Assembly: GCF_001194135.2 (NCBI RefSeq)
Contig: NC_068986.1
Span: forward strand, 2,644,744 to 2,693,830
Direction: 5' to 3'
DNA: 49,087 bases
Origin: Octopus bimaculoides
Taxonomy: Eukaryota
A program made the position numbers and the translations under genes. Positions 301-45,019 of this stretch are shown piece by piece. The number at the start of each line of letters is the position of its first letter. Position 1 is the stretch's first letter. A model generated the notes under the pieces. That model saw only the letters and a list, made by a program, of their open reading frames with translations. It was not told where the DNA came from and did no database searches.

Positions 301-662
301 GATATATGTATATATATATAGATGTGTGTGTGTCTGTCTGTCTGTATGCATGTATATTTATGTGTGTGTGTATGTGATAGTTGTAAATGACTACCACAGT
401 CATACAAGCAATGGTATTCACTTCCAATATTCTATGAGCACATGTGTGGCTATGAGGAAATATTGCCTTGCTTCGAAACAGTTGAGAGTTGGTGACAAGA
501 AGAGCATCTTATTATGCAGAATCTTCCTCAATAAACTCTGTCCAACCTATGCAAGCTTAAAAAAGTAGATGTTAAACAGACGATGAGGACATGTCTATCT
601 GTATTATTTCAATGTTGGCATTCAGTTAATTTTTACTTAATTCATTTCTATTTATGTTGCAG

Positions 663-3600
663 GAAAACACATCCCGAGAAACATCCTGGCATTGTTCTAA
701 CTACCGAGGAATGTGTGTGTCAAGTATGTGGAGATACAGCTTCTACCATCCATTATGGAGTACTCACTTGCCCAGACTGTGTGCTTTTCTATCGACTGAG
801 CATACAAGACAGCTTTGCTGATGGGTACCACTGCAAGCATAAAGGGCATGAAATTACAAAGAGAAACCGAGGAAAGTGTGAGTACTGTTGGTACCAGAAA
901 TGTTGCAGAGCTGGAATGACGAGTGATAAACCAGAAATTGGTGAAACTGTTACTGTGATAAAAGTAGAGAACAAACAACAGCAAATGAAAAGTGAAAAAG
1001 CAGCCAACTCATTATTGAAGATGCCATCACTACATAAACACATAAATAAAGAGACACGCAAGGCCCCAACCCCACAACAAACTACAGAGTCTCAGAAAGT
1101 TCCACCACCGAAAAAAGATCTCAACTTATGTAAAGTCTGTGGAGATCGTGCTTTCAAGAAACATTATGGCATTTTGGCCTGTCCAGAATGTGAAGTTTTC
1201 TTTAAAATGAGTATTCTTGACGATTTTTACAAGGGCTATTTTTGCAAGTTTAAAAAATGCAAGATTAATCGTTTTCGGCGAAGTAGCTGTGAGTATTGTT
1301 GGTATGAGAAATGTCTGCTTAGTGGTATGCAGAAAGAGAAAGATGGTAGTCAACTGGAAGATGATGACAGCTGCAGGGTTGTTTCATCAACACAAAAAAT
1401 GGTAAAACCCGTTTGTGGCATTAAAGTAAAAGATGAGCAAAAAGAAAGCGAAGGATCTGTAACAGCAAACAATAACAAAAAGTGTATGAAGGTCATCAGT
1501 AGCAACAAGAACAACAACAACAATATTAGTAGCAAACTTCTAAGCAATAGCAACAACAATATTGGTAGTAAATCTCTAAACAATAGCAACAACAGTAGCA
1601 GCAGTAGATGTGTCTCTTCAACAGCGTCGAAAAGTCCTGTGAAAAAAAGGAAACTTGAAAGTATGGATCCAAACCTAGCCAAACCTTCTGAACATCAGAG
1701 CGACATTAACAGCATCCCTCACAAACGCTTCAAAGGGGTTAGTCATTCAGCAAGTAGCACACAGAATACTGGTAACTCTTCAAATACACAACTTCACTCA
1801 TCTTCAAAAAGGTGTACCAGTAATACTTCTGTCTCATCATCAACTGCTTCATTCCAGTCTCTTTCTGTTTCATTTTCTTGTTCGTCATCATCATCACAGT
1901 CATCATCATTAACCTCACCATCATTGTCATCATCATCATCTGTTTTATCCTCCTCCTCATCACCATCATCAATTCTATCATCATCATCATCATCGACTTT
2001 ATCATCATTGCCATCATCATCATCATCATCGTCGTCGTCATCATCAACCTTTGTATCACAGAAACCGACCAATGCTGTGACATTGCCATCAGTTTTAAAG
2101 AGGACTGCAGCATCAACAACAGTCACATTTTCAGCCCCCACTACTATGACAGCAAAAGTTCAGCAGAAAACAGTGGCAAAGAAAATCGTGGTGCTACCGA
2201 AAAAGAAAGTCACAGACAGTAACAAAGATGGTATCAAGATTGCTTCTGGTGCTGAATCACATCACAAAACGTGTAAATTACCAATTCACGAAAGAGTTGT
2301 AGCACCGAAGGAAGAATTTGTGAGAAATACCAATGTCAGTATTCCCAGCAGAAATGATAACAGTAGCGTTAGTAGTAGTAGTAGTAGTAATACTGGTTTA
2401 AACAGTAACAGCAGCAGACTGAAGAAATCTACTATTTCAACAGCTGTCGGCTCCTGCAATAAAGCGCCTGATGTAAATGCAGTGAATAGTAGCAAATTGA
2501 CTGATTCCGGTGCCACATCTGACAAATGTAAGCATGAAGACTTGTTGAAATCTACTGAGAGTGGTACGTGTAGAACTACTACTACTACTAACAACAACAC
2601 CACCAAGACTTTCATTGATCCTTCTCATTTTACACAAAATCTGAACATTTGCGCTGTGTGTGGTGATCAGGCTTCTGTTGTTAATTACGGAGTGCTTACT
2701 TGTCCAGATTGCCGCATCTTTTTCCAGATGTGCATACAAGATGGTTTTGCTGCTGGTTTCAGCTGTTCAAAACGACGAAATTGCTCAGTTACAAAAACAA
2801 ACCGGGAAAACTGTGAATTTTGTTGGTACAAGAAATGCCTTGCGGTTGGAATGCAGGCTGACCAAATATCAAAAATGACACCGACTTGTGATCGTTTTAC
2901 TTTTGCCTTGACGCCAACCTGTGATCGTTTTACATTTTCCTTACCTCTAACACCAATATCATCTGCACAGTTAACAACTGCCATTAGTAATACCACGAGC
3001 ACAAATACAACATCTGTACACATGGTCAGCTCTTTGGATCAAGTTAAAAATCCTGGAAATACACTATATTCTTCAGTGATAACTCCACTCATTCAAAATG
3101 AAGAATTGTGCATTGTCTGTAGTGCACCTTTTGCTGAGATCTATTGTGGTGCTAAAGTTTGTACTGATTGTAAGGCCTTCTGCAAAGAAAATGTTGATTC
3201 AAAGATATGCTCTAAGTATGTCTGTGAGCAGACTCAAAGCTGTTCTATTATCAATAGTGATTTGCTGCCAAAAAATCGGTGCAGCTATTGTTGGTATGAG
3301 AAGTGTGTAGAATGTGGTTTGCTCAGTAAAGAAACAATTGTTTTGAGAAATTCGTCCAGTTTGGAGACCCAGGCATCAAAAAATCAAATCCCTGATCCTG
3401 TTTTGGATAATCTAGTTTTCAGAGAATCAGTGGACATATACAGCGCTGTTTTGGACAATATACTTCAAGATAAAACAAGTCCATCTCATGTGGACAGTGA
3501 AATTCTTGAACCATACTTTGGGGACAATACTTCAGACAACCAGATTTGTGAACTACCAAGTTTGATGGAAAGTATGTTTGAATCTCTAACTAAATCATCT

Positions 3601-6600
3601 GAAGAAATAGAATTGATCCAGAAGAAATTTGAACGTCTAAAAATGGAAAAAGAACGTGTTAGTGCTTTAAAGAAACAAAACCAGCAACAGCAGCAGTCTG
3701 TGATGTCACCTGATACAATGAAAGAGTGTCCGTCAAAAGCTACCAGGCGTGTACTCCTTAACAGTAACGATAATCAGACAAAGGAAAGTGGTTTGTTACT
3801 AAAAGACAGTCATCTTAAGCAGACCAATGAAACCAGTAATTTTCCACCCTCCTCTTTGACTTCCAAAAATACCAGAATTGATTCCAACTCCGAGCACTCA
3901 AATCAAAATCGGGATCCATCGCTTTTTAGTTTGGATTGGGAAACAAAGTCTAATGAAAAACGTAACAACCCTGTGAAAGACAGTTTTACTTCAATTGCAA
4001 TGAATGATCGTTTGATGGTAAAAGTAACTAACGAAGTTCCACAGAACATTTTTGACAGCTCAGATGATATGACACCAGTTTCTGAATCTCTGCCATTTGT
4101 GTCATCAGCAGCTGGAGAAAAACAGGTGAAGAAAGTGGTTTTCAAATCAATCGTAGATCGAAGTGAAGACCAGGATGTGTCAGAAAAAGTCTCTGATATG
4201 GACAGATGTAATTTTGAGCATGGGGAGCGGGAAACTGCTCAGCAAAAATTAAATGAGCTTCAAATGAAGAAAGATAATGTGGAAGAGAAGCTTCTAATGC
4301 TCCAGAGAAGCATTGAGAAAGAACGGAAAAAACTTCTTAGTCTTCAGAAAGAAAGGAAGCGAGGAGTCAAAATTTGTGATAAGTCTCTGGAATCTTCAAA
4401 TGCATTGTCTTTAGATGCCAAAATGCCACAACTAGAACCTGAACCACAGCTTATATTGGAATCTTCAAATATTGATTTTGTTAAACAGAAACAGTCTGAA
4501 ACAAATGATTTTGCTATGATTGAGGATGGTGGCTCAGTTGTAACTGCTACTCATTCTGAAGAAACAGATTCTGAGAAGTTATGTAGAGTCTGTGGAGATA
4601 GAGCTCCAGGAGTCCTCTATGGAGTGTGGACATGTCTGAAATGTAGTGTCTTCTTCCGCCAGAGTCTAGACAAGCAAATTTCCAGTCAGTATGTGTGCCG
4701 AGATGGCAACTGTTATGTTGACAAAATAAATAGAGGTGTTTGTAGATATTGCTGGTACCAAAAATGTTTGGCTGTTGGAATGTCAAAACAAGAGAAACGA
4801 ATCGTTCCAGTTCAACCACCAACACCTACTCCCAAAGCTGGTCAACAGGATCCAAACAGAAATGAAAAGTCCCATGACAATAGTGATCACCATCAGATTA
4901 ATGAAAATGAAATGGGAATTATGCAGAATGTATTCCCTAATGATAAAAGTCCTTTAAATAAAGACCTTTCTGAGGAAATGAGTGAAGAAATACATGAAGA
5001 GATTGGTAATGTGGAGGTTTGTGATGTTCCTGATTTCAAGTCAGTGTCCAAAAGTAATAAAAACTGTTCAAGAACATTTTTGGATTTGAAAATTTCGCAG
5101 CCATCTTCAGGTGAACCAACAACCACAACATCTTCTTTGGCCCCAGAATCTTCAAATACAGAATTTGTAGATAATAACAATCAAATTAGTGATTCTGGAT
5201 GCTCTGTTGATATGAGTGAGTCGTTTCCTTCTCAAAAACCTAGCTGTGATTCCAATAATTCATCGATGTCCACTGCCATGGATACTAGTTTATGTAACGA
5301 AGATGTTACTGTAACAACGGAGAGAAAAGATCAAAGTGACGGTTCTCTTCTGTATGTCAGCAACGTGGATAAAAGCACTGCTTTGAATTCAAATTCTGAA
5401 AGCATTCCTCTAGTTGCATCAAATGATATCACAACTGAAATTCCAGTTGCAAATGCAAAAACTTCTTTGCCAGAGTCTGACCAGGGTTTGGGATTACGAG
5501 AAGCACCAACGTTCCGGAGAATCTTACCTGAAAGCCTTAGTACATCAGTGGATCCCTCCGTAGTTACTGAAGTCATTCCTGAACCTTTATGGAATTCTGT
5601 AGACACTGAGATTGTTCAAAAGAAGTCTGGGGATTCTGTTGATGATGGTGAAAGCAGTGCTGATAGAGTGACACCCGTAGAAATTATTGATTCAACTGGA
5701 GCAATACAGTCTGAGGAAAATGTGGATCATACTATTCTTGAGACATTGCGAAATTTTACCGATAAATCTGTTATTACAGAAATTATTCCAAGTTCTTCAA
5801 GAAATTCTGTAAATTCTTCAGTTTTGGTTGATATGATCCAAAACTCCAACTGTTGTTCACCTGAGGCTCCTGTTGGCAAAGAAATCATTCCTGGAGCACT
5901 GTCTCATTTCATTGATAAACAGTCTCTTAATCCTATAGCAGTGCCAGACCCTTCAGAGACCAGTTCTGAATTTGCTGGAAATTCTGATAATGAAGATTCT
6001 GTTTCAGATAGTAACCATCCTAAAGAAACTGGAACTGACTACTCCAGGATGACAACCAACCCAAATATTTCTTACAGGTCACGAGCTCCAACAGAGAAAG
6101 CATCTTTCACTTTGCTGAAAAGAACAGCTCATATGTCAAGGCAGAAGACAAGCAGAGCTGTTGGTGTACCATCTCTGTCTTTACGTTATATGATTAAATG
6201 TTGTTCTCCAAAACATATTGCAAATCAAATGCACAGTCGAATCAAAAAGTCAGTTCAAATGATTGGAAAGGCTAAGAAAAAATCTTCACTTTCAAAAAAT
6301 GCACTTCCTAGCTCATCGCATCAAGCTGCACTGAAAGAATATGAGTTTGTTGATGATAATCTTAATGATGATAATGATGATAATGATGATAATGATGACG
6401 GTCATTTGCAACATTCTTTGCCTAAATCACAGAAAACATACAGTACTGTGAAATTGTCTAAAAAAATGGCCAAGCAAAAAGTAAATTCAAAGACTTCCTT
6501 GAAAAAGAATTTGACATCACCTTCTATGCAGAAACAAAATCGTCATCCCCAAAACAATACTTCAAAGTCTATTTCTACTGTTGCCAAATCTACTTTCAAA

Positions 6601-9455
6601 ATCCCCCTAAGAAATAAAGATGTAGATTTGGAAACAACGCCAGCCAAGCCACTGCGTAAACGAGGCCGTCCACGAAAGATAAAATCAACACTACTCAGCA
6701 CTGAAGTAGCACCAACCTGCAAACAAGATTCTCTCTGTAAAGAAAACAGTAAACAGCCATCTTCTGTGTCAGAGAACGCCACTGGAATTTCGTCTGTCCC
6801 TTCTGTTGCTATAGTTGCAGAATTCAGTGAGAGAAATAAAGTCCGAAATAGAGAAGATAGTAGCATGGCTGAAAGCAGAGTTGGAAACAAAACTGATACT
6901 ATTTTCATTGGGACTAGCTTGTGTAGTGTTTGTGGAGATGTGTCTCATGGATTTCATTACGGTATTATTTCATGTTCAAGCTGCCGTAGTTTCTTTGCAC
7001 AGAGCACTGATTCCAAAATTGGCTGTAAATATGAAGTATGCAATAAATCATGCATAATCAACAGTGTAACACGCCGATTCTGTCGATATTGTTGGCTACA
7101 GAAGTGTCTACAGGCAGGAATGATGAAAGGCACCACTAAACGAGGACGGCCACCAAAACTTAGACCCCAAACTAACGAAGCTGAAACTGTTAGCAAACAG
7201 AAGGATTTGACTAGTGAAAAGGAAGTTTCTATTCCTGAGGCTCAGATTGGGACAAATTCAGAAACAGCACTTCGTAAAGAATCAATTCAAAATAATGAAA
7301 GCACTGTGGACAATAGTGATCCAGTCATTACTGACAATGACACCAACGCCGAAGACGATCAAGTTGATGGTATTGGTATATCATCTGATGTTATTAAAGA
7401 AGGGAACAACGGTGATGAGGAAGTAAATCTGAAAGCAAAGCCTTCCAGTTCAACACAAACTGGAATATCAGTTGATGAAGACTCTAATGAAATGAACTTA
7501 GAACAAGTCTCTAATAGATCTTCAGTTTCTCAAGAGAAGATGCTATGTGAGACGAGTTCAGAGAAGATAGTCAGTGAGCAATCCTCTATTGTTTGCATTG
7601 ATTTGGATAGTAATTTAAACAGCACTGGCACAGCTAATCTCACTGAAACCGAACCAATGGCTGTTGATAATGATTCTGATTCACCTTTAATTATTGAAAG
7701 TGTTCCACACCAGAGTGACAACAACAAAAGCGATGTCGGTAATTCCCAGAATCCAAACTCCACCAGCAGTCAAGAATGTTTCTGTAAGGTATGCGGTGAC
7801 TTGGCATCAGGAATACACTTTGGCATAGAAACCTGCTGGTCATGTACTATTTTCTTTAAGCAGAGTACTGACTCACGAACAACCAAAAAATATAAGTGCC
7901 ATAACAAAAACTGTTGTGTCACACCTGATAACTACGAACGTTGTTCTTATTGTTGGTTCCAAAAGTGCTTGCTTGTTGGCATGTCAAAAATGCTAATTCC
8001 TACAAATCAAAGCCAAAATGGAACTGGTCAATTCTTGGAGAGCTATACTTCAAATACTGACCAACCCATCTCTTCAGGAATCCACCAGGTAAAGAGTGGT
8101 AAGCTGTTACCTACAATTGCAGATTCTTCAAATACTGAAAGAAGTAAAGTAGGAGGCACGTCCCTTGCATCTGTAGCAACTTCCATCAGTAGCACAAACA
8201 GCATAGTTTCTGGTGCAACTTGTACAGCTACAGATGTTGTTGCTTGCAGTGTTCCTCCTGTTGAAAGAGAAATCAGCACAGTTAGTACATTTAATCCTAG
8301 AAGTCAAACTGTATCAGTAATTACCACAACACCATTACAGACCAACGCAAACACTAATACTACCAGCACACCTAATACAGTTTCTTTGCAGCCACAGTTA
8401 TCAAATAATAAACAACCTACAAACACTGTAGATGCTGTTCAAAGTAGACTTCACACTTCACCTGTAAAATCTGTGTTAGTTGCTCCTAAGCCTGCCACCT
8501 TACAACCAGCACAGACACCAACTCATTCTGATCTGATATGCAGTGTTTGTGATGATACTGCAATTGGTGTCCGGTATGGAGTACAGACATGTCGTAATTG
8601 TTTGTGTTTCTTTCGAACTATACTAAATGGGAGAATACCTACTGAAAAGGATCATGCAGATGGCAACTGTTTTATTAATAAAGCTACTACCAACCGGTGT
8701 CGATTCTGCTGGTACCAAAAATGTCTTTCTGTTGGGATGAGTGATACTCTACAAATGAAAAAGCAGCAAACATTAATGGCTACAAACAGACTCTCAGCAC
8801 CTGAACAGGATTGCAATGCCAACAGTTCCAATGTTTGTGACAAAACTAATCCTATATCAACTCCTAGTAATAATTCAGAGATTATTAACAAGCTTTCAGG
8901 ATTATCTATGACCACATCTTCAGAAGTACAAATGCTGCCTGTTACATCAAGCAAATCGGGTTCCACTTGTCCTACAGTATCTCAGTCCAAAGACCTAAGT
9001 TCCAACATGAGGAACACGACAAATGAATCGCCATCCGTGACTACTAATCTAAGCAAAGATGTTGCTAAGTTATGTAAAGTTTGTGGAGATGTCTCGTTTG
9101 TTTCTCATTATGGCATTGCATCTTGTTTGAACTGCAGTGTCTTTTTCCGACGCAGTTTGGACAAAAGACTACATCGTGCATATAAATGCCTCAACAAGGA
9201 CTGTTTAATCAGTCGTACCAGTCGTAGTCGCTGTTATTACTGCTGGTTCCAGAAGTGCGTGGGTGTTGGTATGTCCTACAAGGTTAAGCGTAAATTACGT
9301 CATCAGAAAGAAAAGTCAAGTGATCAAGCAGAAGTTCCACAGTCCCTGTTATCAACTCCTAATCAAGATGCTGTTAGTCAAAATTCTAAGAACAGCAGCA
9401 GTGGAAACAATACCCAACCAATTTCAAGTCAGAATAAAAGTCTAGTGTCTGATGG
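663..9455 (+). CDS. Giant exon (8793 bp, phase 2-2) of the multi-DBD gene, containing DBD1-DBD9
   Basis: Acceptor tttatgttgcag|G at 662/663 and donor GG|gtaagt at 9455/9456. Stop-free for about 2930 codons. DBDs at 718-918, 1129-1329, 2650-2853, 3109-3321, 4582-4782, 6922-7122, 7783-7983, 8539-8739 and 9073-9273. Confidence 0.92.
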
Positions 9456-10063
9456 GTAAGTAATAGTTTTCTAACATCTTAAATATTTTCATACCTGTTT
9501 GGGATGACTCTTGTCTTTTGGTCAAAACTTATAATTTCTAAGGCATTCAGACTGGGAGTATAAGGCTTCTCATTGAATGGGATGCCAGACTAAGTCTAGA
9601 GTAGCTTGAATGGGAAGCGATGCTCCACCCACCATATTCGTTGGATATTGCCCCACCAGATTATCATTTATTCCGCAGTCTTCAAAATCATTTGGACGCA
9701 AAACATGAATTCTGTAGACGAGGTTAGAAGAGGTGTGGTGTTATAAAAAGAATGAAGGGAGGCAACTCTAGTTTATTGAGGTCTAAATTATAAAAAATAC
9801 ATAATATATTCAAAAATTTAGGTCCATTATATCATCAATCAATCAACTTATCAATTAGCCAACTAAATAACCAATTAATCAATCAATCAATTTATTGGTT
9901 TTGTAATGGAGTTGCATATCACTGTCTACATCCCTATATATACACATGCACATACAACACAAATATATATATATATATAAGAACCGAAACATGTTAAATA
10001 TCTCTGAGAAAATTATAAATTAAAATTCATTTTTTATATATTGGCGTTTTCAAACTTCTTTTT

Positions 10064-10101
<38 letters not shown>

Positions 10102-10648
10102 NNNNNNNNNNNNNNNNNNNNNNNNNNNNNNNNNNNNNNNNNNNNNNNNNNNNNNNNNNNNNNNNNNNNNNNNNNNNNNNNNNNNNNNNNNNNNNNNNNN
10201 NNNNNNNNNNNNNNNNNNNNNNNNNNNNNNNNNNNNNNNNNNNNNNNNNNNNNNNNNNNNNNNNNNNNNNNNNNNNNNNNNNNNNNNNNNNNNNNNNNNN
10301 NNNNNNNNNNNNNNNNNNNNNNNNNNNGGAGAATATCGTTTATATTGTGTATCACTCACTAAAAAGATGAAATTTAAAATATGTTATCTCTCTCTCTCTC
10401 TCTCTCTTTGCACCGTCGCTAGAAGGGGACTTAACTCATGTTTGCAAATGCTGGTGTATTTCTCCGACTTGAAAATTGTTAGAAGTTATGGTTTAAAATT
10501 ATTTTTAATGCAAAAATTCACCTCTTAGGAAGCAAAAAAAAAAAAATTAATAAATGGCTGATTCCGGGCATTTTCAAACATGAGGAATCCATTCGTGCGA
10601 CTCCCAGATTGCTATCTTGTAAGGTGTGGATTTCTATAGATGCAACAA

Positions 10649-10681
<33 letters not shown>

Positions 10682-13600
10682 CACACAAACTCAGCTTTAC
10701 AATATGTACTGATTACTCAGTGGGAGTGGGTAATTGTGAGGGCTTGAGGAAATTATAGGAATTAGATGGATAAAAAATTCCGTAAAAAAATATTCTTTGA
10801 TTTTTTTTCAAATTTGATTTAAATGAACAATTATATTTAATATTATACAAAATCTAGTTTTGTTGCTGTAATTATTTCTAATCATTATGCTGCTACTACT
10901 TTCACCAGCAATCATGTAGAGTATACTAGTACTTTGAGTGGACTCTGAATAGTTCATATTATGGTAATTAGGATAGTTCTGGTTAGATCCCCTGTTGTGA
11001 ATAGGAAAATAATCTGAATAATCGTAATATTGGGGAAGAATATTTAATTGGAGATCCACAGATAGTTGCTAATCATCTAAATAATTTAATTATAGTAGCA
11101 GCTGTGGAGTATGCTCATGTATCTACATCTATACCAATTGTAAATATTACTGTAATTTGAAAATGTTGGTGTATTTACAACTGGCGTAAAATGATAAGGC
11201 ACCTTTATAGCATCAGATTTCTGTATATTCTTTTTCTACATGTTATATATTGTAGTTGAGTAATAGAAATCATTAATACTTATACCTGTGTATTTTGATT
11301 GAAGAACTTTATGTAATAGACCTAACAACAGCTATGAAGCAATAAGTCCAGTTGAAGTGATAGTTGTGTTATGTAGATTTAAAAACAAATTAAATATAAG
11401 CAACTGAATATCAATTGCTGTAAAAGAGAGAGAGAGAGAGAGAGAAAATAAATGGTACAAACAGCTTAAATATATGCTGGAAGTTAGGGGTAGTTAGATA
11501 CAGTCTAAAATAACAAAATGGAGAAAATGATGAAAACTAATTATAAAAAACAGATAACTATACAGCTGTGAGCCAACATGAAGATGTTAATAAAAATGCA
11601 ATGCTTTTAATTATAATGCTTAATTTTGATTGTTGTTGAAAAAATTTTTATATTACTGTGTTAATATACTTGAATATTTTTTTATATATTTTTAGTGACC
11701 TGGACAACCTGTCTCTTGGATTCACTCGGCATAGTGGCAACATACTCTGTAAAGTGTGTGGTGATGAGGCCTCTACTGTACATGCAGGTGTACTCACATG
11801 TTTTCCTTGTCGATCTTTCTTTAAACGAAGTCTAAAGAACAGTATCAACCGGAAATATTCTTGTGATAACAAAAACTGTTCAATTACCAAGAACAACAAA
11901 AAGAGCTGTGATTATTGCCGGTATCGAAAATGTCTTGCTCTTGGAATGGCCAAAAATACTGTAAAGCATAATGTGCAGCCTTTAAAAGATAAGACTGATA
12001 GCCAAAAGATGGTTGAGTCTGCTAGCAATGTACAGATTGAATCCATTACGAGGGTAATGTATATTTTCTTTTTATTTGCGTATATTTGGACATAAAGGTA
12101 CATGGTCCAGTTGTTAGAATGTTAGGCTCGTGGTCTTTAGGGTGTGGGTTTGGTTCTTGGATTGGGCTGTGCACCGTATCCTTGAGCAAGGGTCTTCATT
12201 TCATATTGCTCCAGAGCACTCAACTGAGCATGAGTACCAGTGGCACCTGAGAATTAACCCTGCGACTGACAGATGTCCAGTTCAGAGGGGTGCAATCTTA
12301 TACACTCAGTCTAAACACCTTGGAAATCTAGATAAGCTTTATCTTCAAGAGCCGCTAAGCCTGAGGCAGATTATCTATTGTAGCCATTATATATTTGTGC
12401 TGTGTATTGGAATTAGAGGTAAAAAATTCAACCTTTTCATTGCAATTTCTGTTATTCATATAATTCAGTTTATAACATTTCCAGGTAGGAACACCTGAGA
12501 TTGTTCATTGTAACATTAGTAAGAATTGTATTAAGTGCTATAACTACACCCTTGCCTGGGTACTTTGGTGATATTGAATGGAACTAAGTTTCAGTTGTAA
12601 GTAACCACTTAATAAACTAAGAAATTGTAATTTTTTTAACAATATTATATTTTTGGCATTGCTCACTTTTTACAGAACCATTGCAAAGTCTGTGGATATG
12701 AAGCATCTGGAATTCATTATGGTGTTTTGACCTGTCACAATTGCCGAGTTTTCTTCTACAAGAGCTGTGAGCAACAAAGTTTTAAAAACTATCAATGTGC
12801 CCTGAAAAATTGTAATGTATACGGTAGTGCGCAAGTGAATTGTTCCTATTGTCGCTACCAAAAGTGTTTGAGGGTTGGCATGTCAAAGGAATTGAGCAAA
12901 CGAGGAAGACGGCGCAAACTAGATGAGAATTTGTCTAAAGAAATGCCAGAGATGAAGAAGCAGCGAACAAAGGCTAATAGCACCAATAAATCTAAAACCA
13001 AGTAAGTTTTTTGTTTGTCCATTCCATTGATCATTCAAAATTTCTATGCCACTTTTATCATCATCCCAATTGCTTTAACATCCACTTGGCTTGCAAGAGC
13101 CCTGTGCCAGTGCTTCACAAAAACCACTTGTGCTGGCGTCACGTAAAAGTACTCATACCAGTGCCACATTAAAAGCATCCAGCACACACTGTAAGGTGAT
13201 TGGCGTTTGAAAAGACATCTAGCCATAGAAACCAAGCTAAATCAGACTGGAACCAAATGCAGCCCTCTTGTTTGCCAGCTCTGGCTGAATGGCTCAGACA
13301 GTGGAAAAAATAGGCATTAAAGCAGTGTTTCCCAAACTTTTTGCATCAAATTGCAATATCGCCCACTTATTGGCCAAAAATTGCTCCATTGCCCACCTGT
13401 GTAAAAAAAACCTCTGATACGACCATACCCCTAACACTAAATCCCCTAGGAGACCCCCCCCTGTATCATTTGACACACACTATAATGGCAGACGAAGTAC
13501 CACTAAGTATTTCACCCAGCGTGCAAACGTTTCTGCCAGATCACCGCCTTGTTAATATATATAGATATGTATGTATGTGTGTGTGTGTGTGTGTGTGTGT

Positions 13601-14577
13601 TTGTGTGTGTGTATGTATGTATATATATTTATATAGGAGAATTTGTTGTTGAAAATGCACTGAATTTGAAAAACATATAGTTGTTTTTAAATAGATTTAT
13701 TCACATACATACCAAATGTGAACATTTGATCATTTAAACATGCTTGTTTGATTTCTACTTTCTAATTTTAAACTGTGTTAAAATCCCATTGTTTTATATA
13801 CATTTCTACCATTGATGGACAAAAAAATTGTTGACACTAGTTTGGTATGTATGTGAATGAGTCTCTTCAAAAATAACTACATGTTTTTCAAATTCAGGTG
13901 CATGTTTAAAAACAAATTCTCCTTCTTTCCATATATTTATATATATATATGTATGTATACATACATACACACAGTGGACTTCTTTCAGTTTCTGTCTACC
14001 AAATTCACTCAAGGCTTTGGTCTGCCCATGCTATAGTAGAAGGCACTTACCCAAAGTGTGTGTGTGCATACGAATTGTATAAGTTATTTCTCATTTAACT
14101 TACACCACTGGGCTTAAAAGAACAGAGATGGAGAAAAACATATTTAATATCTTTCACATTAATGTTATGTTCTGTTTATACAATTTTATCCTTTCTTTGT
14201 TATAGCAACTCAGATGAAAACCCACAGAATATGGTGAAGGAAAATCCAAAAGTTCCTTGCATTGTTTGTTCGGATGTGTCCAGTGAGATTTATTGTGGGC
14301 TATGGGTTTGCCGAAGCTGCTGCACTTTCTTCCAGTTCAGTATTACTAACAACCGCAGCGAGAGTTACAAGTGCAAGTACAACAACCACTGCATTGTGAA
14401 CAAAACCAGCCGAGTATTGTGTCATCACTGCCGTTTCAAGAAATGTCTGATTGTTGGAATGATTAAAGAAGAGAAGTAAGCTGCTTTAATGTCTTTAAAC
14501 TATGCAATTCTGCAGAAAATATCTATAGAGTTTAGCATCTCTCTCTCTCTCTCTCTTTTCTCTCTCTCTCTCTCTCT

Positions 14578-14617
<40 letters not shown>

Positions 14618-14672
14618 CTNNNNNNNNNNTCTCTTTCTCTCTCTCTCCCTCTCTCTTTTTCTCTCTCTCTCT

Positions 14673-14703
<31 letters not shown>

Positions 14704-15905
14704 CCTCTCTCGCTTTCTCTATCTCTCTCTGGCTGGGTAACCATGCACCTCCTCTACAGCAAGACATTTGTTTCTTTCTCTCTGTCACTTTCTGACCTTT
14801 CATCATCTGATACAAGATCACTTCCTCCAATGCCCCACTCCCCTCTCAAAGATTCCTTGTCTTGCAAGTCACTTGGTAACCCTGCCAGTGCTGGTGCGAC
14901 TTAAAAAGCATCCAGTTCACGCTGTTAGTCACATTGGTGCTACCATCTTCATTTTTGCTACTCTTATGATCAAATTGCCGCAAACATACTTTATGGCTCT
15001 ACTTACTGTATGTACCCTTGTTTTTAAGATAGGTACACCATGTTCTGAGTGTTGGCAACATGAAGACAACGTCAGAAAGACTGTCTAACCCATGCTAGCA
15101 TGGGAAAACTGACATAAAATTGTGTGGGTATATTTACACACACATGTATGTGTGTGTGTATGTGGATGTTCCTGAATGTTGATATTTCAATTTTTATTGT
15201 TTGAATGAAACAGTGTTGATGTCTTGTTGACATTGTGACTGATGGCTCGACACTTTCAAATATCTGTGAAATATAAAAATCCCATTCTCCTGAAAAACAG
15301 GCGAGGGTTTGTGACAGGAAGAGCATCCAGTTATTAAATCCTGCTCCCAAATCCATTTCTGTCAAAGTCATAGCATGGAAAAAAAAAACATATTATAACA
15401 AATAAACTATATATATGATTATGTGTATCAACAATTTTATTATTTTCTTCTTTTTTTCTTTTAGCACTACAAATAACTATGAAAAAAAGAAGCTTTTGTG
15501 TAACCCACGTCACTTTCCGTGTAAAGTTTGTGGAGATCTTGCATCTGGTATACATTATGGCCATTTCATTTGTGAAGGCTGTAAAGGATTTTTCCGTCGT
15601 AGCATACGCAAGAAAATGGTTTATTTGTGCATAAGCAAAAACTGCATAATCAATAAGTTCACAAGGACTCGTTGTGCCTACTGTAGGCTACAAAAATGTT
15701 TGACTCTTGGCATGTCCAAAGAAGCCAGTCGAAAGGGCCGGCGAACAAAGGAAAACCAAATGAAACTAATGAGCCAACCCCGTGAAGAATGCAAAATGTA
15801 TGAGGAGTACACAAACCTAAACTCTGCACCTAGACCATGGCCCAGTAACGCAATACCACAGAGGGAACCAGTGGAGTATATTGAAGATGCTGATCAACCT
15901 AAAAT
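663..15905 (+). CDS. Multi-DBD nuclear-receptor-like protein (13 C4 zinc-finger DBDs, no LBD seen). Visible CDS is join(663..9455,11696..12053,12676..13001,14206..14475,15465..15905), 10188 nt, 3396 aa; 5' exon(s) outside the window
   Basis: All junctions are GT-AG and frame-compatible (phases 2/2/0/2/2). Thirteen copies of C-x2-C-x13-C-x2-C...C-x2-C-x4-C-x3-G[ML], with the usual [DY]x5[YF]G and FF motifs largely retained. Confidence 0.88.
6655..6678 (+). other. AT-hook motif RKRGRPRK
   Basis: Matches the R-G-R-P AT-hook core with basic flanks. A second copy, KRGRPPK, is at 7138-7158 directly after DBD6. Confidence 0.7.
11696..12053 (+). CDS. Multi-DBD gene exon with DBD10 (11748-11948; P-box CFPCRS)
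   Basis: tttttag|T acceptor (phase 2) and AGG|gtaatg donor (phase 0). [21 protein letters not shown]...[14 protein letters not shown]. Confidence 0.9.
12125..12370 (+). mobile_element. Degenerate tRNA-derived SINE in an intron of the multi-DBD gene
   Basis: Shares the TCCTTGAGCAAG...CTTCATTTCA...TGCTCCAG core with copies at 19725, 26789 and 31927. Confidence 0.6.
12676..13001 (+). CDS. Multi-DBD gene exon with DBD11 (12682-12882; P-box CHNCRV)
   Basis: ttttacag|AAC acceptor (phase 0) and AA|gtaagt donor (phase 2). [21 protein letters not shown]...[26 protein letters not shown]. Confidence 0.9.
14206..14475 (+). CDS. Multi-DBD gene exon with DBD12 (14258-14461; P-box CRSCCT)
   Basis: ttgttatag|C acceptor and AA|gtaagc donor; 270 bp, phase 2-2. 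Confidence 0.88.
15465..15905 (+). CDS. Multi-DBD gene exon with the canonical DBD13 (15520-15714; P-box CEGCKG)
   Basis: cttttag|C acceptor (phase 2). [37 protein letters not shown]...[24 protein letters not shown]. Ends either at donor AT|gtaagt (15905) or at TAA 15907-15909. Confidence 0.9.
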
Positions 15906-16529
15906 GTAAGTTGTTTTCTAATCTACACTGACATCTCATAAGTAAATAGACAGCATCGTTTTTTGTAAAATTTATTCCTCCTTTCTTCTTTGGATATTTG
16001 CCGGTCAAAGAAGAGGTTTTCCTTCCAGCTGTTCTGCCATAGTAGCCAAGTTGGTGAAGATACTTCACAGAAGTATTCTTGCTCATTTAGAGTTGCTCTG
16101 TGACATCAGCTACCTTGCAACTGGGATTATTTTCAGCAATCCTTTCAAGTTATTTTTCAGTTTCAATATTTTGGCTTCATTTTGTAGGTGGTCTGTGTGC
16201 TGTTTCATGTTATTTGTGTGATATTATTTAAAGTAATCACCCAGATTAGCAGAGGAGACAAGAAATAACTTTAGATTCTCGATCAGGCCAAACAAAGCCT
16301 TATGAGTGGATTTAGTCAACGGAAACTGAAAGAAACCTGTTGTATATATGTATGTGAGCACGACCTTATGATTGTGAGCCACGTACCCTAACCATTAAAT
16401 CTTGCACCTTTACAAGAGATGCCTGCATTCACTATAAGGCAATCTTAAATAGTAACTAGATTTTAGAGCCTTCACAAAAGATGGTACAATACCTTTATCA
16501 ATCCTATAGCACATAGAGTTAATGATATA

Positions 16530-16750
16530 GGAGTGTATTAAGTTTTGGCACAAGGGCAGCAGTATCAGGAGAGGGATAAGTCGATAATATCGACCCCAGT
16601 CCTCAACAGGTACTTATTTTATCAACTTCGAAAGGATGAAAGCAAAGTCAGCCATGGCGGAATTTGAACTTGGAGTTTGAAGATAGACAAAATGCTGCTA
16701 AACATTTCCCCTGGCGTGCTAATGATTCTGCCAACTCGCCGCCTTACAAT
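16530..16750 (-). mobile_element. SINE of the family with core GGTACTTATTTTATC...GAAAGGATGAAAG...GGCGGAATTTGAACT
   Basis: Reverse complement of the TSD-flanked copy at 28847-29068; a further partial copy near 34320-34450. Confidence 0.7.
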
Positions 16751-17052
16751 AGAAGAATATTATATATATCAACAGTTTTGTTCCATTGTTAAGATTGTTT
16801 ACTTATAGACATAACATTTCAAATAAATAAGATTGGTCGATTTTTGGTTTTAGGTACATATTTCTGCTGGTTTGATAATGAAACCAAAACGGCATGCCTT
16901 TGTTCATTATGGCGGGATTTCAAGTCCCTTCCCATGAACTGTGAATTCTAAACACACACTCGGACACATCTCGTACATGTTTTAAAATACTTATCGGTCA
17001 ATTTTCTTACGATTAATCTAAATGTTGCTGTGATTGTTTAAAACATTGCATA

Positions 17053-18377
17053 TGTAAGGGAACCGACGTCGGGGTCACCAATTGTAAGGGTCGACCGTGC
17101 GAACTCAAAAAGGAGATATGGTGACGAATGGAAAAACAGAGGACTCCTTTTATTTAAACGTGTCACACGGTCGAACATACAAATATATATCAAAGATGAT
17201 ATATAGATGATATGTTATACGACGATAACATAGATGACCAGTAATGAAAGACCACAACCGTATTAGATGAATAACAGAGATATTTATTGTAGCGTTAAAG
17301 ATGTATGTCTGTGTGAGAGTGTGAATGCGACATATAAGAACATAATCAAAGACAGGCCGTCATACAAAGAAAAGTGTGTATGTGAGTGATACATGTGTGA
17401 GTTATTACAGCAGATAGAAAGAGTCAGTAAATGACNNNNNNNNNNNNNNNNNNNNNNNNNNNNNNNNNNNNNNNNNNNNNNNNNNNNNNNNNNNNNNNNN
17501 NNNNNNNNNNNNNNNNNNNNNNNNNNNNNNNNNNNNNNNNNNNNNNNNNNNNNNNNNNNNNNNNNNNNNNNNNNNNNNNNNNNNNNNNNNNNNNNNNNNN
17601 NNNNNNNNNNNNNNNNNNNNNNNNNNNNNNNNNNNNNNNNNNNNNNNNNNNNNNNNNNNNNNNNNNNNNNNNNNNNNNNNNNNNNNNNNNNNNNNNNNNN
17701 NNNNNNNNNNNNNNNNNNNNNNNNNNNNNNNNNNNNNNNNNNNNNNNNNNNNNNNNNNNNNNNNNNNNNNNNNNNNNNNNNNNNNNNNNNNNNNNNNNNN
17801 NNNNNNNNNNNNNNNNNNNNNNNNNNNNNNNNNNNNNNNNNNNNNNNNNNNNNNNNNNNNNNNNNNNNNNNNNNNNNNNNNNNNNNNNNNNNNNNNNNNN
17901 NNNNNNNNNNNNNNNNNNNNNNNNNNNNNNNNNNNNNNNNNNNNNNNNNNNNNNNNNNNNNNNNNNNNNNNNNNNNNNNNNNNNNNNNNNNNNNNNNNNN
18001 NNNNNNNNNNNNNNNNNNNNNNNNNNNNNNNNNNNNNNNNNNNNNNNNNNNNNNNNNNNNNNNNNNNNNNNNNNNNNNNNNNNNNNAAACTGGACCGAGA
18101 CAAATTTGGCCGCCGAGTTAAAGCTATTTATAACAAATTATTGGCTCACCAGATGGTAGAAATATACTCTATCACGTGACCTTATTAGGGGTCGTGATTG
18201 GTCAGTTTGCGTTCTGGCGGGAACGGTTCGAAGAAGTTGCCGATTCGAATAATGATCAGTCACGTGATGACAAGGTTAATGTTTTCCCCTACGTTCGCGT
18301 TTGTTTATATTTAAAGGAAGATTGTATGTAATGGCGATAGTAGTTTGTATCTAATGGCGCTAGGTAGTTTCACTACA
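17053..18377 (-). mobile_element. LTR retrotransposon remnant with tRNA-Trp primer-binding site (Ty3/Gypsy-like)
   Basis: Minus strand begins TGTAGTG (18377) and ends CCCTTACA (17053). 4-bp TSD CATA at 17049-17052 and 18378-18381. PBS TGGTGACCCCGACGT at 17080-17066. TATAAATA near 18130 and AATAAAA near 17152 on the minus strand. Interrupted by a 651-N gap. Confidence 0.8.
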
Positions 18378-18885
18378 CATACATCGACCAAATTCAAATG
18401 TACGTGTGAATGTAATTGTCAATCAATCTGGTTATATATCTCCTACATCTTCCTACCACCTACTCTAGCTCGTTCTTGCAACTCTGGTTGGATAAAAAGA
18501 ACTTTATTTTAATATGAACAAGACAATGAATACACTATGAATAGCAAATCTATTCAATTTGACAACCAGATTTTTTTAATTAATTTTTTTCTTTCAACAC
18601 TTTGAAACTTTGGATACTGGTAGAATGTGTCACCATAGCCTCTGAAATGCAGTTAAGGCGATCAGTGAGTGCTATTTCCTCTTTCTGTTTGGTCCCCCCC
18701 CCTCCATGACCCTTCGCGTGAAATACTTTAGGTGACTTAGTATACTCTATGAGGGTGATTAATGTGAGAAAATGACGTTTTCATTTTCCTTGTCCTTTTC
18801 CATAGTGCTACTTGCCTCCGTCTACAACAAACAATTCCCACCATAGTAGTTTTCAGGGTCATGTGATCAGAATCAGTTGATATAG

Positions 18886-18921
<36 letters not shown>

Positions 18922-18929
18922 GACAATGT

Positions 18930-19500
18930 TGATGATCTAGAAGCTAAACACTATGGAGAGCATCCAGCAAACAGCTAATTCCATCCACCAGAGTATTAAA
19001 GTAACAATAACCTGCCCTGACAAGCACCCGGACTATAGATTACCTGTTCTAGACATGGCACTCTGGCTAGAAACGAAGAACGGTGAGGTCCAGTGCCTTC
19101 ACTCCCATTATGCCAAACCCATGGCCTCTAAGAACCCTGTTCACAAGAACACAGCTATTGCGGACAACTCCAAGTTCCACATTCTTATAGCTGACTTGGT
19201 GAGAGTGATGAGGAATGCGTCTCGCATGTGTGACCTTATGGAATTGGAAAGACACATACAACACTTCATCCGCCCGCATGCAGTTCTCTGGCTACAATCA
19301 AAGGAGCAGGATTAGAGTGTGCACAGGAGCCAGGACTAAGTACAAAGTCAACATAGAAAGTGTTGCTAAGGAGATCTGCCTGCTGTACAGGAGTCAATCC
19401 TGGAACAGCACAGAAAGGAGCAGAAATAAGATAGAAAAGAAGTTCAGCGGGGAATATTCATCTAGAGTTGTGCTCTTTGAAAAAAAATCAGTATCTTTAC
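18930..19500 (+). pseudogene. Degenerate Penelope-like retroelement RT C-terminal fragment
   Basis: ITCPDKHPDYRLPVLDMALWLE...HSHYAKPMAS...K..IL..DL.R..RN.S resembles the thumb region of Penelope-like RTs as I recall it; frameshift near 19270. Confidence 0.6.
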
Positions 19501-19724
19501 AGTATAAGGCATGGATCTCAAACAAAAACTCACATCACTCAGATCTCTAGACATCTCGGAAAACTACATGGGTGAAAAATTTCTTGGTGGGCCACAAAAG
19601 ACCCAAGAATTGGGACAGGCTGCTAACTCTCACAACTTGAGAGCATTGTATAACAATCGGAAAGGTGTGTTTGATCCCCAAAGGAGTGGTACTGGACCTA
19701 TTCTTTCTAACAGATGTTTTTATG

Positions 19725-19840
19725 CATAGCCTAGTGTTTAAGCTGCTACACTCCCGATCACTAGATTGTGGGTTCGATTTCCTGACAGGGCAACGCGTTG
19801 TGTTCTTCAGCAAAACACTTCATTTCACTTCGCTCCAGTC
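19725..19840 (+). mobile_element. tRNA-derived SINE 5' part
   Basis: A-box-like TAGCCTAGTG, B-box GGTTCGATT, then GCGTTGTGTTCTTCAGCAAAACACTTCATTTCAC shared with other copies. Confidence 0.7.
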
Positions 19841-20073
19841 CCCTTTTGATCAGCGGGGTGGTGTCATTTGAAGGCTAAAACAATGCAAAAGCGCATTGTG
19901 ACCAGCGATGTGCAACAACATCTGATAGCCTTGTTGATCACATGATAATCGTAATATACATAATCTGAAAGGTATTTGTAAAAAATTTCATTTCGAAATA
20001 CCCATTTTTCTGAAAGTTACGAGGAAAGAGATCCGACTTGTGTAAAACTTCTTAAACCACTCTTTCTTCTTCT

Positions 20074-20104
<31 letters not shown>

Positions 20105-20434
20105 TTCCACAATGAATTCCGATATAATTGGTCTGTACCCAATTCTTGAGCGTATTTATAGAAAATTTCGTTTAAACAAATATCAATTTTTCCGAAAGAT
20201 ATGACGAAATAAAGTTAGCGGGGCGGGGTGGGGGACACACGTATGTGTGTGTCTGCTTAAGTTTGTGCATTTATTTTGTTTCACTTTGTGAATCAATAGT
20301 ATGTGACAATTTAGCTGTGTTTCCTTCTATTGTTATGTGTACATAAATCAACATTGTAGCAGGAGGTCGAGCAAAATGCATGCATGTATGTATGTATGTA
20401 TGTATGTATTGTCTTAGCTATTCTAACAGCTAAG

Positions 20435-20719
20435 GCATACCTCAATTTACGTCGGTAATATGCGACGAAGTTCAAAAAACGACGTAATACGAAAAAGCAA
20501 TGATAATATTTTACATATTATCTGATTTTCCACTTCCTTATTGGTTTTTAACTCTTTTTAAATTTGAATTCTTATGCTTTTAAATATGTTTGCTGAGACC
20601 GACGTAAAGTCGGATAAAACGATTTCAGTTGAGGTTTTATTTTTTTACCTATAAATTTCTTACAAATAAAACGGATGTCGAAAAAGACGTAACTCGAAAC
20701 GACGTACATTGAAGTATGC
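20435..20719. mobile_element. MITE-like element with about 20-bp terminal inverted repeats
   Basis: GCATACCTCAATTTACGTCG ... CGACGTACATTGAAGTATGC (2 mismatches). No clear TSD. Confidence 0.6.
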
Positions 20720-21321
20720 ATGTATATCGTATACGTTTGCACTCATTCACACACACAAGTCATGAAAGAAGCTTAACAGCTTTTCCCCCACCCCACGCTA
20801 ACCTTCATACACCAGCACACACAGCACGACGTCCTTGTTCTCTGTGTCTATTTAAATAAATGCTGAGACATTTCGTCATCACTTGCTGCAGTCTTGCTCT
20901 CTCTCTCACTCAGCGCACATTCTACTCGATCTGGTTTAACTGCCTCTCCTCTTCAACCGGGGACCTTGCAAACTACATGACCTTTACCTCTCTTACTTTT
21001 AGTCTTTTTTTCCCCTAAAAATTCCAGATCCTCACTTTTTTCTCAACATCTAACAATTGATTTTTTTTAAATTCCAAAATTTCTTTGTCTTTTCCTACTA
21101 TATATCGTAATCGTTATCTATTCGGTAATCAAGTTCATCTAATTTTATCTATCTATCTATCCTCTCTCTCTCTCTCTCTCTCTCTCTCCACACACACACA
21201 CACATACAAACATATATATATCCATCCATCTATCCGTAACGCTCTCTCTACATACCCATACATAAACACATCTATATTCTCTTGTTGGCCTAATCTAATC
21301 GATTTTGAATCACTCTTGGCC

Positions 21322-21398
21322 ATGGGATCGGTATTAAACATCGCAGCTTTCGATCCGGATTCCAGGGATGTTGACGATATCATTCAGGATGGAAAGAT
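21322..21398 (+). CDS. SCLY: SCLY exon 1 ([25 protein letters not shown])
   Basis: GCCATGG start context; AT|gtaagt phase-2 donor matches the phase-2 acceptor at 31718. No homology in this part, so it is assigned by position and phase. Confidence 0.75.
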
Positions 21399-22185
21399 GT
21401 AAGTTGGATTCTAAAAACATTATCAGCATCTTTGAGTTCTTTTAGAATTTATTGTTGTTGTCATTGTAAAATGAGCGGGTTTCGATCCTGGTTTCATTTG
21501 GGTGGAATGCCACAAACCCCATTTACACCCGCATATAAATATTAAGGCCTTGTACTTATTAATCAGAATTGTACGACGAATGCCGAAGATTAATTTTTTC
21601 CATTACGGAGATGTACTTGCATAGCAAGTGACCTGATCTGAGATCGTGTGCTGGAACGCAATTTTTACCTTTTTTTTTTTTTCTACCTGTAATTTTTTAC
21701 CTTTTTGAAACTAATTCGTCTCGCTTGAACCAGCGATGGAACCTCCTAGGTCAGGCATGGGCAACCTTTCGTTCTCGAGAACCGGACCGCGTGAAACATG
21801 GCTCAGCATCAGGTGGGCCGCACTACTAAAAAAAGAAAATTCAAGGCAATTTTTCGTTAGACGCACCATTCAGAACGTCCGACGGGCCGCGGGTTGCCCG
21901 TGACTGTTCTTATGTGGTTGGTTGCTAAAATACGTGCTAAAGTCGCAGCTGAATATCCTTAAGAACATATTCTGTTAAAAAAAAATAGGAAGGCATGGTC
22001 ACAGCTGGAACGCCTTTGATCGTATATCTGCTCACTACTCAGGCCTGATCAGAACTAAACTACAAAAAAACGTCATCTCCTTCATATCACCAGTGGCCCT
22101 TCGAAAGGCATCAACATCACCTTTTTTGCATTTCATTTCTCAAAAATATTTCAGGTTTCCCGAAATATGTATGTCTGTATGTGTG

Positions 22186-22217
<32 letters not shown>

Positions 22218-22895: not shown

Positions 22896-22950
<55 letters not shown>

Positions 22951-25574: not shown

Positions 25575-25631
<57 letters not shown>

Positions 25632-27357: not shown

Positions 27358-27411
<54 letters not shown>

Positions 27412-35140: not shown

Positions 35141-35206
<66 letters not shown>

Positions 35207-44983: not shown

Positions 44984-45019
<36 letters not shown>

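Follow-up and report, generated by a model that had tools for sequence, protein, structure and literature searches.

Nuclear receptors are usually taught as proteins with one DNA-binding domain (DBD) and one ligand-binding domain (LBD). Here we describe a locus of Octopus bimaculoides, lying in a window of 49,087 nucleotides (the whole stretch analysed; assembly GCF_001194135.2, contig NC_068986.1, positions 2,644,744 to 2,693,830 of the forward strand), in which five exons encode 13 DBDs of the nuclear-receptor type and can be joined in frame to the exons of a selenocysteine lyase (SCLY). Probably, though by no means certainly, the locus is one gene in which a DBD array without an LBD is fused to SCLY, and its product would act as a nuclear, multivalent DNA-binding factor.

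Among described systems, the nuclear receptors with two DBDs (2DBD-NRs) carry exactly two, 17-22 residues apart and followed by a hinge and an LBD, with the P-box pairs EACKK-EGCKG, LPCKS-EGCKK, and EACKS-EGCKG (PMC10497141), and were surveyed in bivalves and gastropods, with no cephalopods (Wu & LoVerde 2023, PMC10497141; PMC11589774). As in the octopus array, more than one zf-C4 DBD lies on one polypeptide, the last DBD is NR1-type with EGCKG-FFRR, and the proteins belong to molluscs or other spiralians. The octopus array differs from them in its 13-15 DBDs, its linkers of 25-714 residues, the lack of an LBD, its twelve non-canonical P-boxes, and the C-terminal enzyme. Identities to the second DBDs of 2DBD-NRs were 43-61%, and the P-box of DBD10, FPCRS, loosely recalls LPCKS, yet DBD10 is not next to DBD13. 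Membership in the 2DBD-NRs was ruled out by the DBD spacing, the P-boxes, and the missing LBD.

RAR (NR1B) resembles DBD13 in its DBD and C-terminal extension, at 71-75% identity, whereas the octopus locus has no RAR LBD and places twelve further DBDs ahead of DBD13. Proteins of the knirps group (NR0A) also have a nuclear-receptor DBD and no LBD, but a single DBD; the octopus DBDs matched best NR1-type receptors, RAR, HR3, and the second DBDs of 2DBD-NRs, not NR0 (no kni-box search was made), and NR0 itself is a bin rather than a clade. Polydactyl C2H2 proteins share with the array the many small zinc DNA-binding modules, encoded mostly in one large exon. C2H2 arrays have 7-residue TGEKP-type links and form a gene family, whereas the octopus modules are treble-clef C4 pairs of ~66 residues, set on long disordered linkers in a single-copy gene. 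A first-pass annotation of the window, made from the letters alone, had likened the array to the C2H2 arrays of coleoids; coleoids are known for C2H2 expansion (PMC12513265), and the likeness holds as an analogy only.

The DBD array and its exons

Translated in six frames, the 49-kb window had 13 matches to the finger-1 pattern C-x2-C-x13-C-x2-C, all on the plus strand within the proposed exons, and every match was followed by a second finger and a KC...GM motif. The matches begin at the first position listed for each DBD in Table 1, and the end of DBD1 was set at its first Cys plus ~66 residues. Finger 1 was exact in 13 of 13 DBDs and finger 2 (C-x5-C-x9-C-x2-C) in 10 of 13; the exceptions are DBD1 and DBD8, where His replaces one Cys, and DBD6, where a Cys is shifted. 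All 13 segments matched Pfam zf-C4 (PF00105) when scanned singly, which bears out the 13 complete two-finger C4 DBDs of the first-pass annotation, and exon 1 alone generated nine zf-C4 stretches (E=6e-143).

Exon 1 lies in a stop-free plus-strand frame at 535-9456. An open frame of this length, 2974 codons, would arise by chance with a probability of ~1e-89, as estimated from base composition (GC ~0.38). The acceptor of exon 1 is ttgcAG/G at 661-662 and its donor GG/GTAAGT at 9456. In the DNA, a pyrimidine tract and AG stand ahead of each of the five exons, and GTAAGT, GTAATG, or GTAAGC comes directly after it; the compatible phases of the exons give 3395 codons without a stop. Five in-frame spliceable exons for at least 3396 residues had been proposed, and the splice sites and phases agree with them. 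As each length is a multiple of three, exons 1, 4, and 5 (8793, 270, and 441 nt) and exons 2 and 3 together (358+326=684 nt) are cassettes that can be skipped in frame, and exon skipping could yield isoforms with fewer DBDs.

The protein continues beyond the proposed extent, 663-15905, at both ends, downstream into SCLY and upstream into an exon outside the window that adds ~350 residues and lies ~10 kb upstream in O. sinensis. This upstream exon encodes a degenerate 14th DBD (DBD0) with long loop insertions; Pfam gave a partial match to its second finger (20.9 bits), and the copy of DBD0 in the cuttlefish Sepia retains CWYQKC...GM. The O. bimaculoides model XP_014778860.1 (LOC106875287), whose sequence agrees fully with the window, connects exon 1 with the upstream exon. 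The product of the predicted long isoform has ~4000 residues and 13 DBDs, 14 counting the degenerate upstream one.

The P-boxes of the 13 DBDs are all different (Table 1). DBD0 to DBD9 have C-W-(Y/F/L)-(Q/E/K)-K-C in place of the canonical C-R-x-x-K-C, and DBD10 to DBD13, encoded in one small exon apiece, retain the Arg. An AlphaFold2 model of DBD1, built from the 13-sequence alignment, reached a mean pLDDT of 91.7 and, in Foldseek against the PDB, superposed on the DBD crystal structures of EcR/USP, TR, GR, RXR, and ERR with TM 0.85-0.94 and rmsd 0.8-1.4 A. The contact residues EGCKG-FFRR, which in NR1-type receptors specify AGGTCA-type half-sites, are kept by DBD13 alone. The five best PDB matches of DBD13 were RAR gamma, alpha, and beta (E=4e-31), with an alignment extending through GMSKEA-R, and its identity to 2DBD second DBDs and HR3 was up to 57-62%. 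In a neighbour-joining tree (~69 residues, no support values), DBD13 grouped with the RARs and DBD1 to DBD11 grouped together, none of the octopus DBDs falling with the first DBDs of 2DBD-NRs. In canonical nuclear-receptor genes an intron splits the two fingers; the coding sequence of DBD13 has no intron between them. The last DBD looks RAR-derived, and DBD1 to DBD9 appear to have arisen by old internal duplication.

The O. sinensis orthologue XP_029638073.2, annotated as 'uncharacterized protein LOC115213281', has 4182 aa and is fused to SCLY. In Pfam it generated 13 zf-C4 stretches and Aminotran_5, and no Hormone_recep (PF00104) LBD. Nor did tblastn with 16 nuclear-receptor proteins, including RAR, HR3, Rev-erb, 2DBD-NR, and multi-DBD proteins, reveal an LBD remnant outside the DBD exons, whether the window or the gap-free locus of O. 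sinensis was searched (best E ~0.1).

Low complexity marks the linkers between the DBDs, in which S (16.4%), T (8.5%), N (8.1%), K, E, and D are abundant, much as the first reading, Ser/Thr/Asp/Glu-rich, had described them. Two AT-hook-like motifs flank DBD6, and their cores are common to three species at orthologous places. The protein also has a short tandem duplication after DBD3 (window 3000-3070, plus strand), which O. sinensis and O. vulgaris have in identical form.

A profile of the 13 DBDs was compared with 1.84 billion representative proteins and gave 11517 matches, the top of the list favouring many-copy proteins. The top-listed matches comprised cephalopod fragments and scattered predictions that carry 3-6 DBDs. 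These predictions originate from Caenorhabditis brenneri, mites, and a stick insect, or are sequences of Logan, ENA, and MetaClust, and an LBD-like tail occurs in several of them. Apart from the cephalopod proteins, the top-listed matches had at most six DBDs per protein, most with short linkers; one entry with 11 partial zf-C4 stretches looks like a translated tandem repeat. The proteins with 3-6 DBDs cluster apart from the octopus DBDs in a rough neighbour-joining tree and look independent in origin, and some (Caenorhabditis brenneri, mites) may be merged tandem genes. Seven sequences, P0010, P0011, P0014, P0016, P0020, P0021, and P0022, carry 4-6 nuclear-receptor DBDs, several of them lying on transcript-sized contigs and having a common LBD-like tail (FFAPQMDLEIRQI...), and look like a separate, also undescribed, multi-DBD receptor group. 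In the protein library each 50% cluster is reduced to one representative, and only fragments stand there for the 4182-aa octopus protein, so that other long arrays could be hidden in it. The whole 3395-aa query returned only the Octopus cluster and two schistosome nuclear receptors because low-complexity words filled the candidate list; shorter queries worked.

The literature search returned no paper that deals with the octopus gene, with a fusion of DBDs and SCLY, or with receptors above two DBDs, and no description of the proteins with 3-6 DBDs. The gene is absent from the nuclear-receptor survey PMC10497141. NCBI and UniProt already contain its sequence, predicted there as an uncharacterised protein or as 'selenocysteine lyase-like', and in O. 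bimaculoides and Sepia the gene is divided over several models; the interpretation is new. The first-pass view that the array goes beyond known architectures therefore stands for the literature searched, which describes nothing above two DBDs; as to DBDs per protein, none above six was found elsewhere among the top-listed matches, and it has to be added that other predictions with 3-6 DBDs exist.

Conservation and age of the array

The O. sinensis locus (L001), taken from a chromosome-level assembly and containing zero N, has the same five exons and splice sites at 94.6-98% nucleotide identity; exon 1 aligned with L001 20901-29738 at 94.6% identity with identical splice sites. Two of the assembly gaps of the window fall in introns 1 and 4 of the array (Table 1), so that no reading frame crosses them, and O. 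sinensis introns 1 and 4 are continuous, the gene model placing no exon there. Simple repeats of the (TC)n, (CA)n, and (TA)n types border most assembly gaps (e.g., 14480-14900) and are the likely cause of the draft breaks there.

The window and O. sinensis were compared by the Nei-Gojobori method over 3381 aligned codons. For all codons, dS was 0.111 and dN/dS 0.21, and the linkers had a dN/dS of 0.264 versus 0.052 for the 13 DBDs (11 non-synonymous versus 49 synonymous changes), six of which showed no replacement at all. The DBDs are under strong purifying selection, as had been supposed for the 8.8-kb frame from its length.

Eight N runs interrupt the window, a gapped draft, and its introns hold transposon-like fragments, from which one might suspect a decaying pseudogene, the product of a repeat or transposon, or an artefact that gaps had introduced into the assembly. 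We give this explanation practically no chance. It was ruled out by the dN/dS of the DBDs, the intact orthologues in cuttlefish and Argonauta, and the identical exon structure in the gap-free O. sinensis assembly; the 2974-codon open frame and the intronic position of both gaps also stand against it. The orthologues in O. sinensis, O. vulgaris, Argonauta, and Sepia were intact rather than riddled with stops.

In Sepia pharaonis, the orthologous exon is a single stop-free frame of 3223 codons with 10 DBDs. It contains an extra, rather degenerate DBD (2b) between DBD2 and DBD3 (L004 23371-23570, CKVCGG(K/R)AVAKHFGIYAC...), which is also found at L003 11156-11350 and is absent from the 441-residue serine-rich linker of Octopus. 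The decapodiform-like contig ERZ21867824 (L003) has the same ten DBDs with one frame change, which may be an assembly error. In total, there are 14 DBDs in Octopus and 15 in cuttlefish.

Between octopus and Sepia, identity was 67.7% in DBD columns versus 30.4% in linkers. Orthologous DBD pairs showed 42-88% identity and paralogous pairs within octopus 26-56%, DBD3 being the exception to the rule that the former are closer. As orthologous pairs are mostly closer than paralogous ones, the DBD duplications, on this comparison of sequences, largely predate the split of octopods and decapodiforms, a divergence of more than 200 million years. The P-boxes of DBD2, DBD5, DBD9, and DBD13 are identical in octopus and decapodiforms, and the His-for-Cys zinc ligands in DBD1 and DBD8 are also conserved. 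The array is common to octopods and decapodiforms.

The selenocysteine lyase part of the locus

The phase-2 donor of exon 5 joins in frame to SCLY exon 2 at 31718, 16 kb downstream. This acceptor accepts, both in phase 2, either exon 5 (long isoform) or the first coding exon of SCLY itself at 21322-21396 (short isoform). With this separate first exon, two isoforms come from the locus, a short one that is the enzyme alone (446 aa) and a predicted long one that combines array and enzyme. The ATG and donor of the SCLY first exon are kept in O. sinensis (L001 ~54728-54804), and P0267 and P0268 are decapodiform equivalents. Two UniProt entries of O. bimaculoides SCLY, A0A0L8GQN2 and A0A0L8GRY4, match the window essentially exactly; the stand-alone SCLY models of this species in UniProt have 422 and 446 aa. 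A0A0L8GRY4 (422 aa) starts MIIYLDYN, would need a first exon ending in ...ATGAT, and may mark a third start site. One SCLY exon (residues 256-290 of the 446-aa enzyme, ...GYRPG, just past the PLP lysine) had no match anywhere in the window; its O. sinensis counterpart is at L001 77880-77987, and in the window it is probably hidden in the assembly gap 39388-39545.

The C-terminal 420 residues of the octopus protein are an SCLY orthologue. The domain generated a hit on Aminotran_5 (PF00266, E=3e-44) and matched the rat and human SCLY structures 3A9X and 3GZC with E=4e-122 and 9e-120, versus ~1e-52 for cysteine desulfurases. The PLP lysine (VGHKF), the catalytic cysteine (GAACHS), and the Asp of EHDS were aligned with the solved SCLY structures. 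As the fusion point lies just ahead of the first conserved strand of SCLY, the enzyme fold is complete in the long isoform, and the C-terminal domain looks catalytically intact. Among the best 120 matches of the SCLY search, PF00266 and PF00105 were combined, with the nuclear-receptor DBDs in front, only in cephalopod proteins; the other mollusc and animal SCLYs among them stand alone, mostly with 405-500 residues and without zf-C4.

The junction of array and enzyme is in frame as QPK/IIYLDYN in O. bimaculoides, O. sinensis, and O. vulgaris, where CAI9724068.1, annotated as 'selenocysteine lyase-like isoform X1', carries the fusion. The Argonauta hians protein GAB1611135.1 contains DBD10 to DBD13 and SCLY with the in-frame junction QPK/KIYLDYN. 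In Sepia pharaonis, a 2152-aa model with both PF00105 and PF00266 adjoins the model of DBD0 and DBD1 and lies on the same 4.1-Mb scaffold as the annotated SCLY. The strongest evidence for the fusion is the Logan contig SRR27666080_82463 (2578 nt, intronless, open from the first base), which runs in one frame from the second half of DBD11 through DBD12, DBD13, and SCLY into the 3′ UTR. As the same parts span ~32 kb in octopus, the contig derives from spliced RNA; by eye, its enzyme sequence is close to that of Sepia SCLY, which makes a decapodiform its probable source. It covers the junctions equivalent to exons 3-4, 4-5, and 5-SCLY, so that, of the exon junctions first proposed, the equivalents of 3-4 and 4-5 are seen in RNA.

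Several observations weigh against a single array-enzyme gene. Direct RNA support covers the last junctions only (3-4, 4-5, 5-SCLY) and comes from this single non-octopus, decapodiform-like contig, while the junctions in Octopus rest on gene models, phase compatibility, and conservation. SCLY-only transcripts or models with their own first exon occur in both lineages (P0007, P0267, P0268), and the O. vulgaris model CAI9724069.1 (3526 aa) stops after exon 3 without SCLY. Given the conserved start exon of SCLY, the long isoform could be a minor one. This start exon and the shortened O. vulgaris model, together with the stand-alone UniProt models of SCLY, would suit two neighbouring genes, in which the array ends at or before exon 5, SCLY works only as the short isoform, and transcripts that join the two arise by read-through or as conjoined products and matter little; that each unspliced phase-2 GTAAGT donor gives an immediate stop also agrees with this arrangement. 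It nevertheless seems quite improbable. The reading frame is kept across the junction in Octopus, Argonauta, Sepia, and the decapodiform-like contig species; gene models of O. sinensis, O. vulgaris, Argonauta, and Sepia contain the fusion, as does one assembled RNA contig; and conservation of the exon 5 tail extends as far as the junction. No terminal array-only exon was found in 15906-31717, where no systematic search was made.

Two further observations concern the introns. In intron 1, a 39-residue piece at 9608-9727 (plus strand) had no Pfam match and is probably a remnant of a mariner/Tc1 transposon; its translation contains what we take to be the C-terminal motif of mariner/Tc1 transposases. 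In the long intron, two overlapping open reading frames of 112-124 residues at 18941-19547 (plus strand) had no significant Pfam match and are possibly a decayed mobile element.

Table 1. Coordinates of the array, the SCLY exons, and the assembly gaps in the window.
Feature	Position	Strand	Description
Exon 1	663-9455	+	phase 2/2; DBD1-DBD9 and long low-complexity linkers
Exon 2	11696-12053	+	phase 2/0; DBD10; 98% nt identity to O. sinensis
Exon 3	12676-13001	+	phase 0/2; DBD11, basic tail KRGRRRK
Exon 4	14206-14475	+	phase 2/2; DBD12; also in Argonauta GAB1611135.1 model and RNA contig SRR27666080_82463
Exon 5	15465-15905	+	phase 2/2; DBD13, then conserved motif; terminates at donor, no stop
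DBD1	718-915	+	P-box PDCVL (CPDCVL); Cys6 to His; CWYQKC
DBD2	1129-1326	+	P-box PECEV (CPECEV); CWYEKC; 71% identity to cuttlefish orthologue
DBD3	2650-2847	+	P-box PDCRI (CPDCRI); CWYKKC
DBD4	3109-3315	+	most divergent; P-box TDCKA (CTDCKA); 3-residue insertion in finger 2; CWYEKC
DBD5	4582-4779	+	P-box LKCSV (CLKCSV), same in cuttlefish; CWYQKC
DBD6	6922-7119	+	P-box SSCRS (CSSCRS); shifted Cys5; CWLQKC
DBD7	7783-7980	+	P-box WSCTI (CWSCTI); CWFQKC; 88% identity to cuttlefish orthologue
DBD8	8539-8736	+	P-box RNCLC (CRNCLC); Cys5 to His, His also in decapodiform orthologues; CWYQKC
DBD9	9073-9270	+	P-box LNCSV; CWFQKC; 86% identity to cuttlefish orthologue
DBD10	11748-11945	+	P-box FPCRS; CRYRKC; exon 2
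DBD11	12682-12879	+	P-box HNCRV (CHNCRV); CRYQKC; exon 3; second half also in RNA contig SRR27666080_82463
DBD12	14258-14458	+	P-box RSCCT (CRSCCT); CRFKKC; exon 4
DBD13	15520-15711	+	only canonical DBD; P-box EGCKG, RAR-type C-terminal extension; exon 5
AT-hook-like motif KRGRPRK	6658-6678	+	upstream of DBD6; RGRP core kept in Sepia and L003
AT-hook-like motif KRGRPPK	7138-7158	+	directly after DBD6; kept in Sepia and L003
Assembly gap	10102-10327	.	within intron 1 (9456-11695), coding sequence untouched
10-N assembly gap	14620-14629	.	within intron 4 (14476-15464), in (TC)n-type simple repeat
SCLY alternative first coding exon	21322-21396	+	gccATGG start, donor phase 2; short enzyme-only isoform
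SCLY exons 2 to last	31718-45237	+	stop at 45235-45237; tblastn with P0005, P0007 and AG/GT inspection
SCLY approximate exons	31718-31842, 33041-33112, 35248-35276, 36476-36647, 37207-37334, 37438-37596	+	tblastn and AG/GT inspection
SCLY approximate exons, continued	~39685-39723, 40241-40324, 41730-41834, 43128-43203, 45066-45237 (incl. stop)	+	tblastn and AG/GT inspection

Proposed function and meaning of the array

In the reading we prefer, the fused protein would work in the nucleus as a multivalent DNA-binding factor. DBD13, with its RAR-like EGCKG P-box, should read AGGTCA-type half-sites, and the other twelve DBDs, with distinct non-canonical recognition helices, would read other sequences or bind more loosely. 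The AT-hooks may add minor-groove contacts, and the long flexible linkers would let one molecule touch many dispersed sites. SCLY probably supplies dimerisation, which would bring up to 28 DBDs into one dimer, and it may also tie the array to metabolism through the status of selenium or PLP. The class-V aminotransferase fold family works as homodimers, and the LBD is the usual dimerisation surface of nuclear receptors; SCLY is a candidate dimeriser because a fold family of obligate dimers sits at the usual position of the LBD.

On the side of DNA binding, too, there are points against this reading. The case for DNA binding comes from the fold only. Of the 13 DBDs, twelve are without most of the canonical base-contact residues (the Glu and Lys of the P-box and the FF-K/R-R pair), and DBD1 to DBD9 have Trp at the position of the canonical Arg of CRxxKC, which is a contact to the DNA backbone, so that some modules may not bind DNA. 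The RAR origin of DBD13 is drawn from ~70% identity over ~70 residues and the tree without support values.

These substitutions, the replacement of some zinc ligands by His, and the fact that nuclear-receptor DBDs also bind RNA and proteins would all fit a real fused array whose zinc modules bind protein, RNA, or metal and localise, scaffold, or regulate SCLY. We consider such modules rather unlikely. The nuclear-receptor DBD fold is kept with high confidence in the DBD1 model; the P-boxes of DBD2, DBD5, DBD9, and DBD13 are conserved across species yet differ between DBDs, as distinct specificities would; conserved AT-hook cores flank DBD6; and DBD13 keeps all canonical contact residues and the RAR-type extension.

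The multivalent DNA-binding factor can also be read more boldly. An RAR-type receptor would have become an enzyme-tethered, dimeric 'polydactyl nuclear receptor' in coleoids, its LBD replaced by a working SCLY and its DBD multiplied to 14-15 modules with distinct, conserved recognition helices, which would read long composite or dispersed DNA addresses. This history is a conjecture that we hold to be doubtful. If true, the protein may couple selenium or PLP status, or the local supply of selenide, to chromatin, and the array gene might be the only RAR descendant in cephalopods; a review inventory lists RAR in bivalves, gastropods, and chitons, not in cephalopods (PMC12965858).

For annotation, the consequence is that a gene currently labelled 'selenocysteine lyase-like' or 'uncharacterized' encodes the array. 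Receptors with two DBDs earned their own subfamily, and the octopus array goes well past that design; 13-15 nuclear-receptor DBDs, no LBD, and a metabolic enzyme in the place of the LBD widen the known use of the nuclear-receptor fold. The array offers a natural test of whether nuclear-receptor DBDs act as array modules like C2H2 fingers, with twelve naturally diversified recognition helices whose specificities are measurable. It would also represent a regulator specific to a lineage whose nervous system is the most elaborate among invertebrates.

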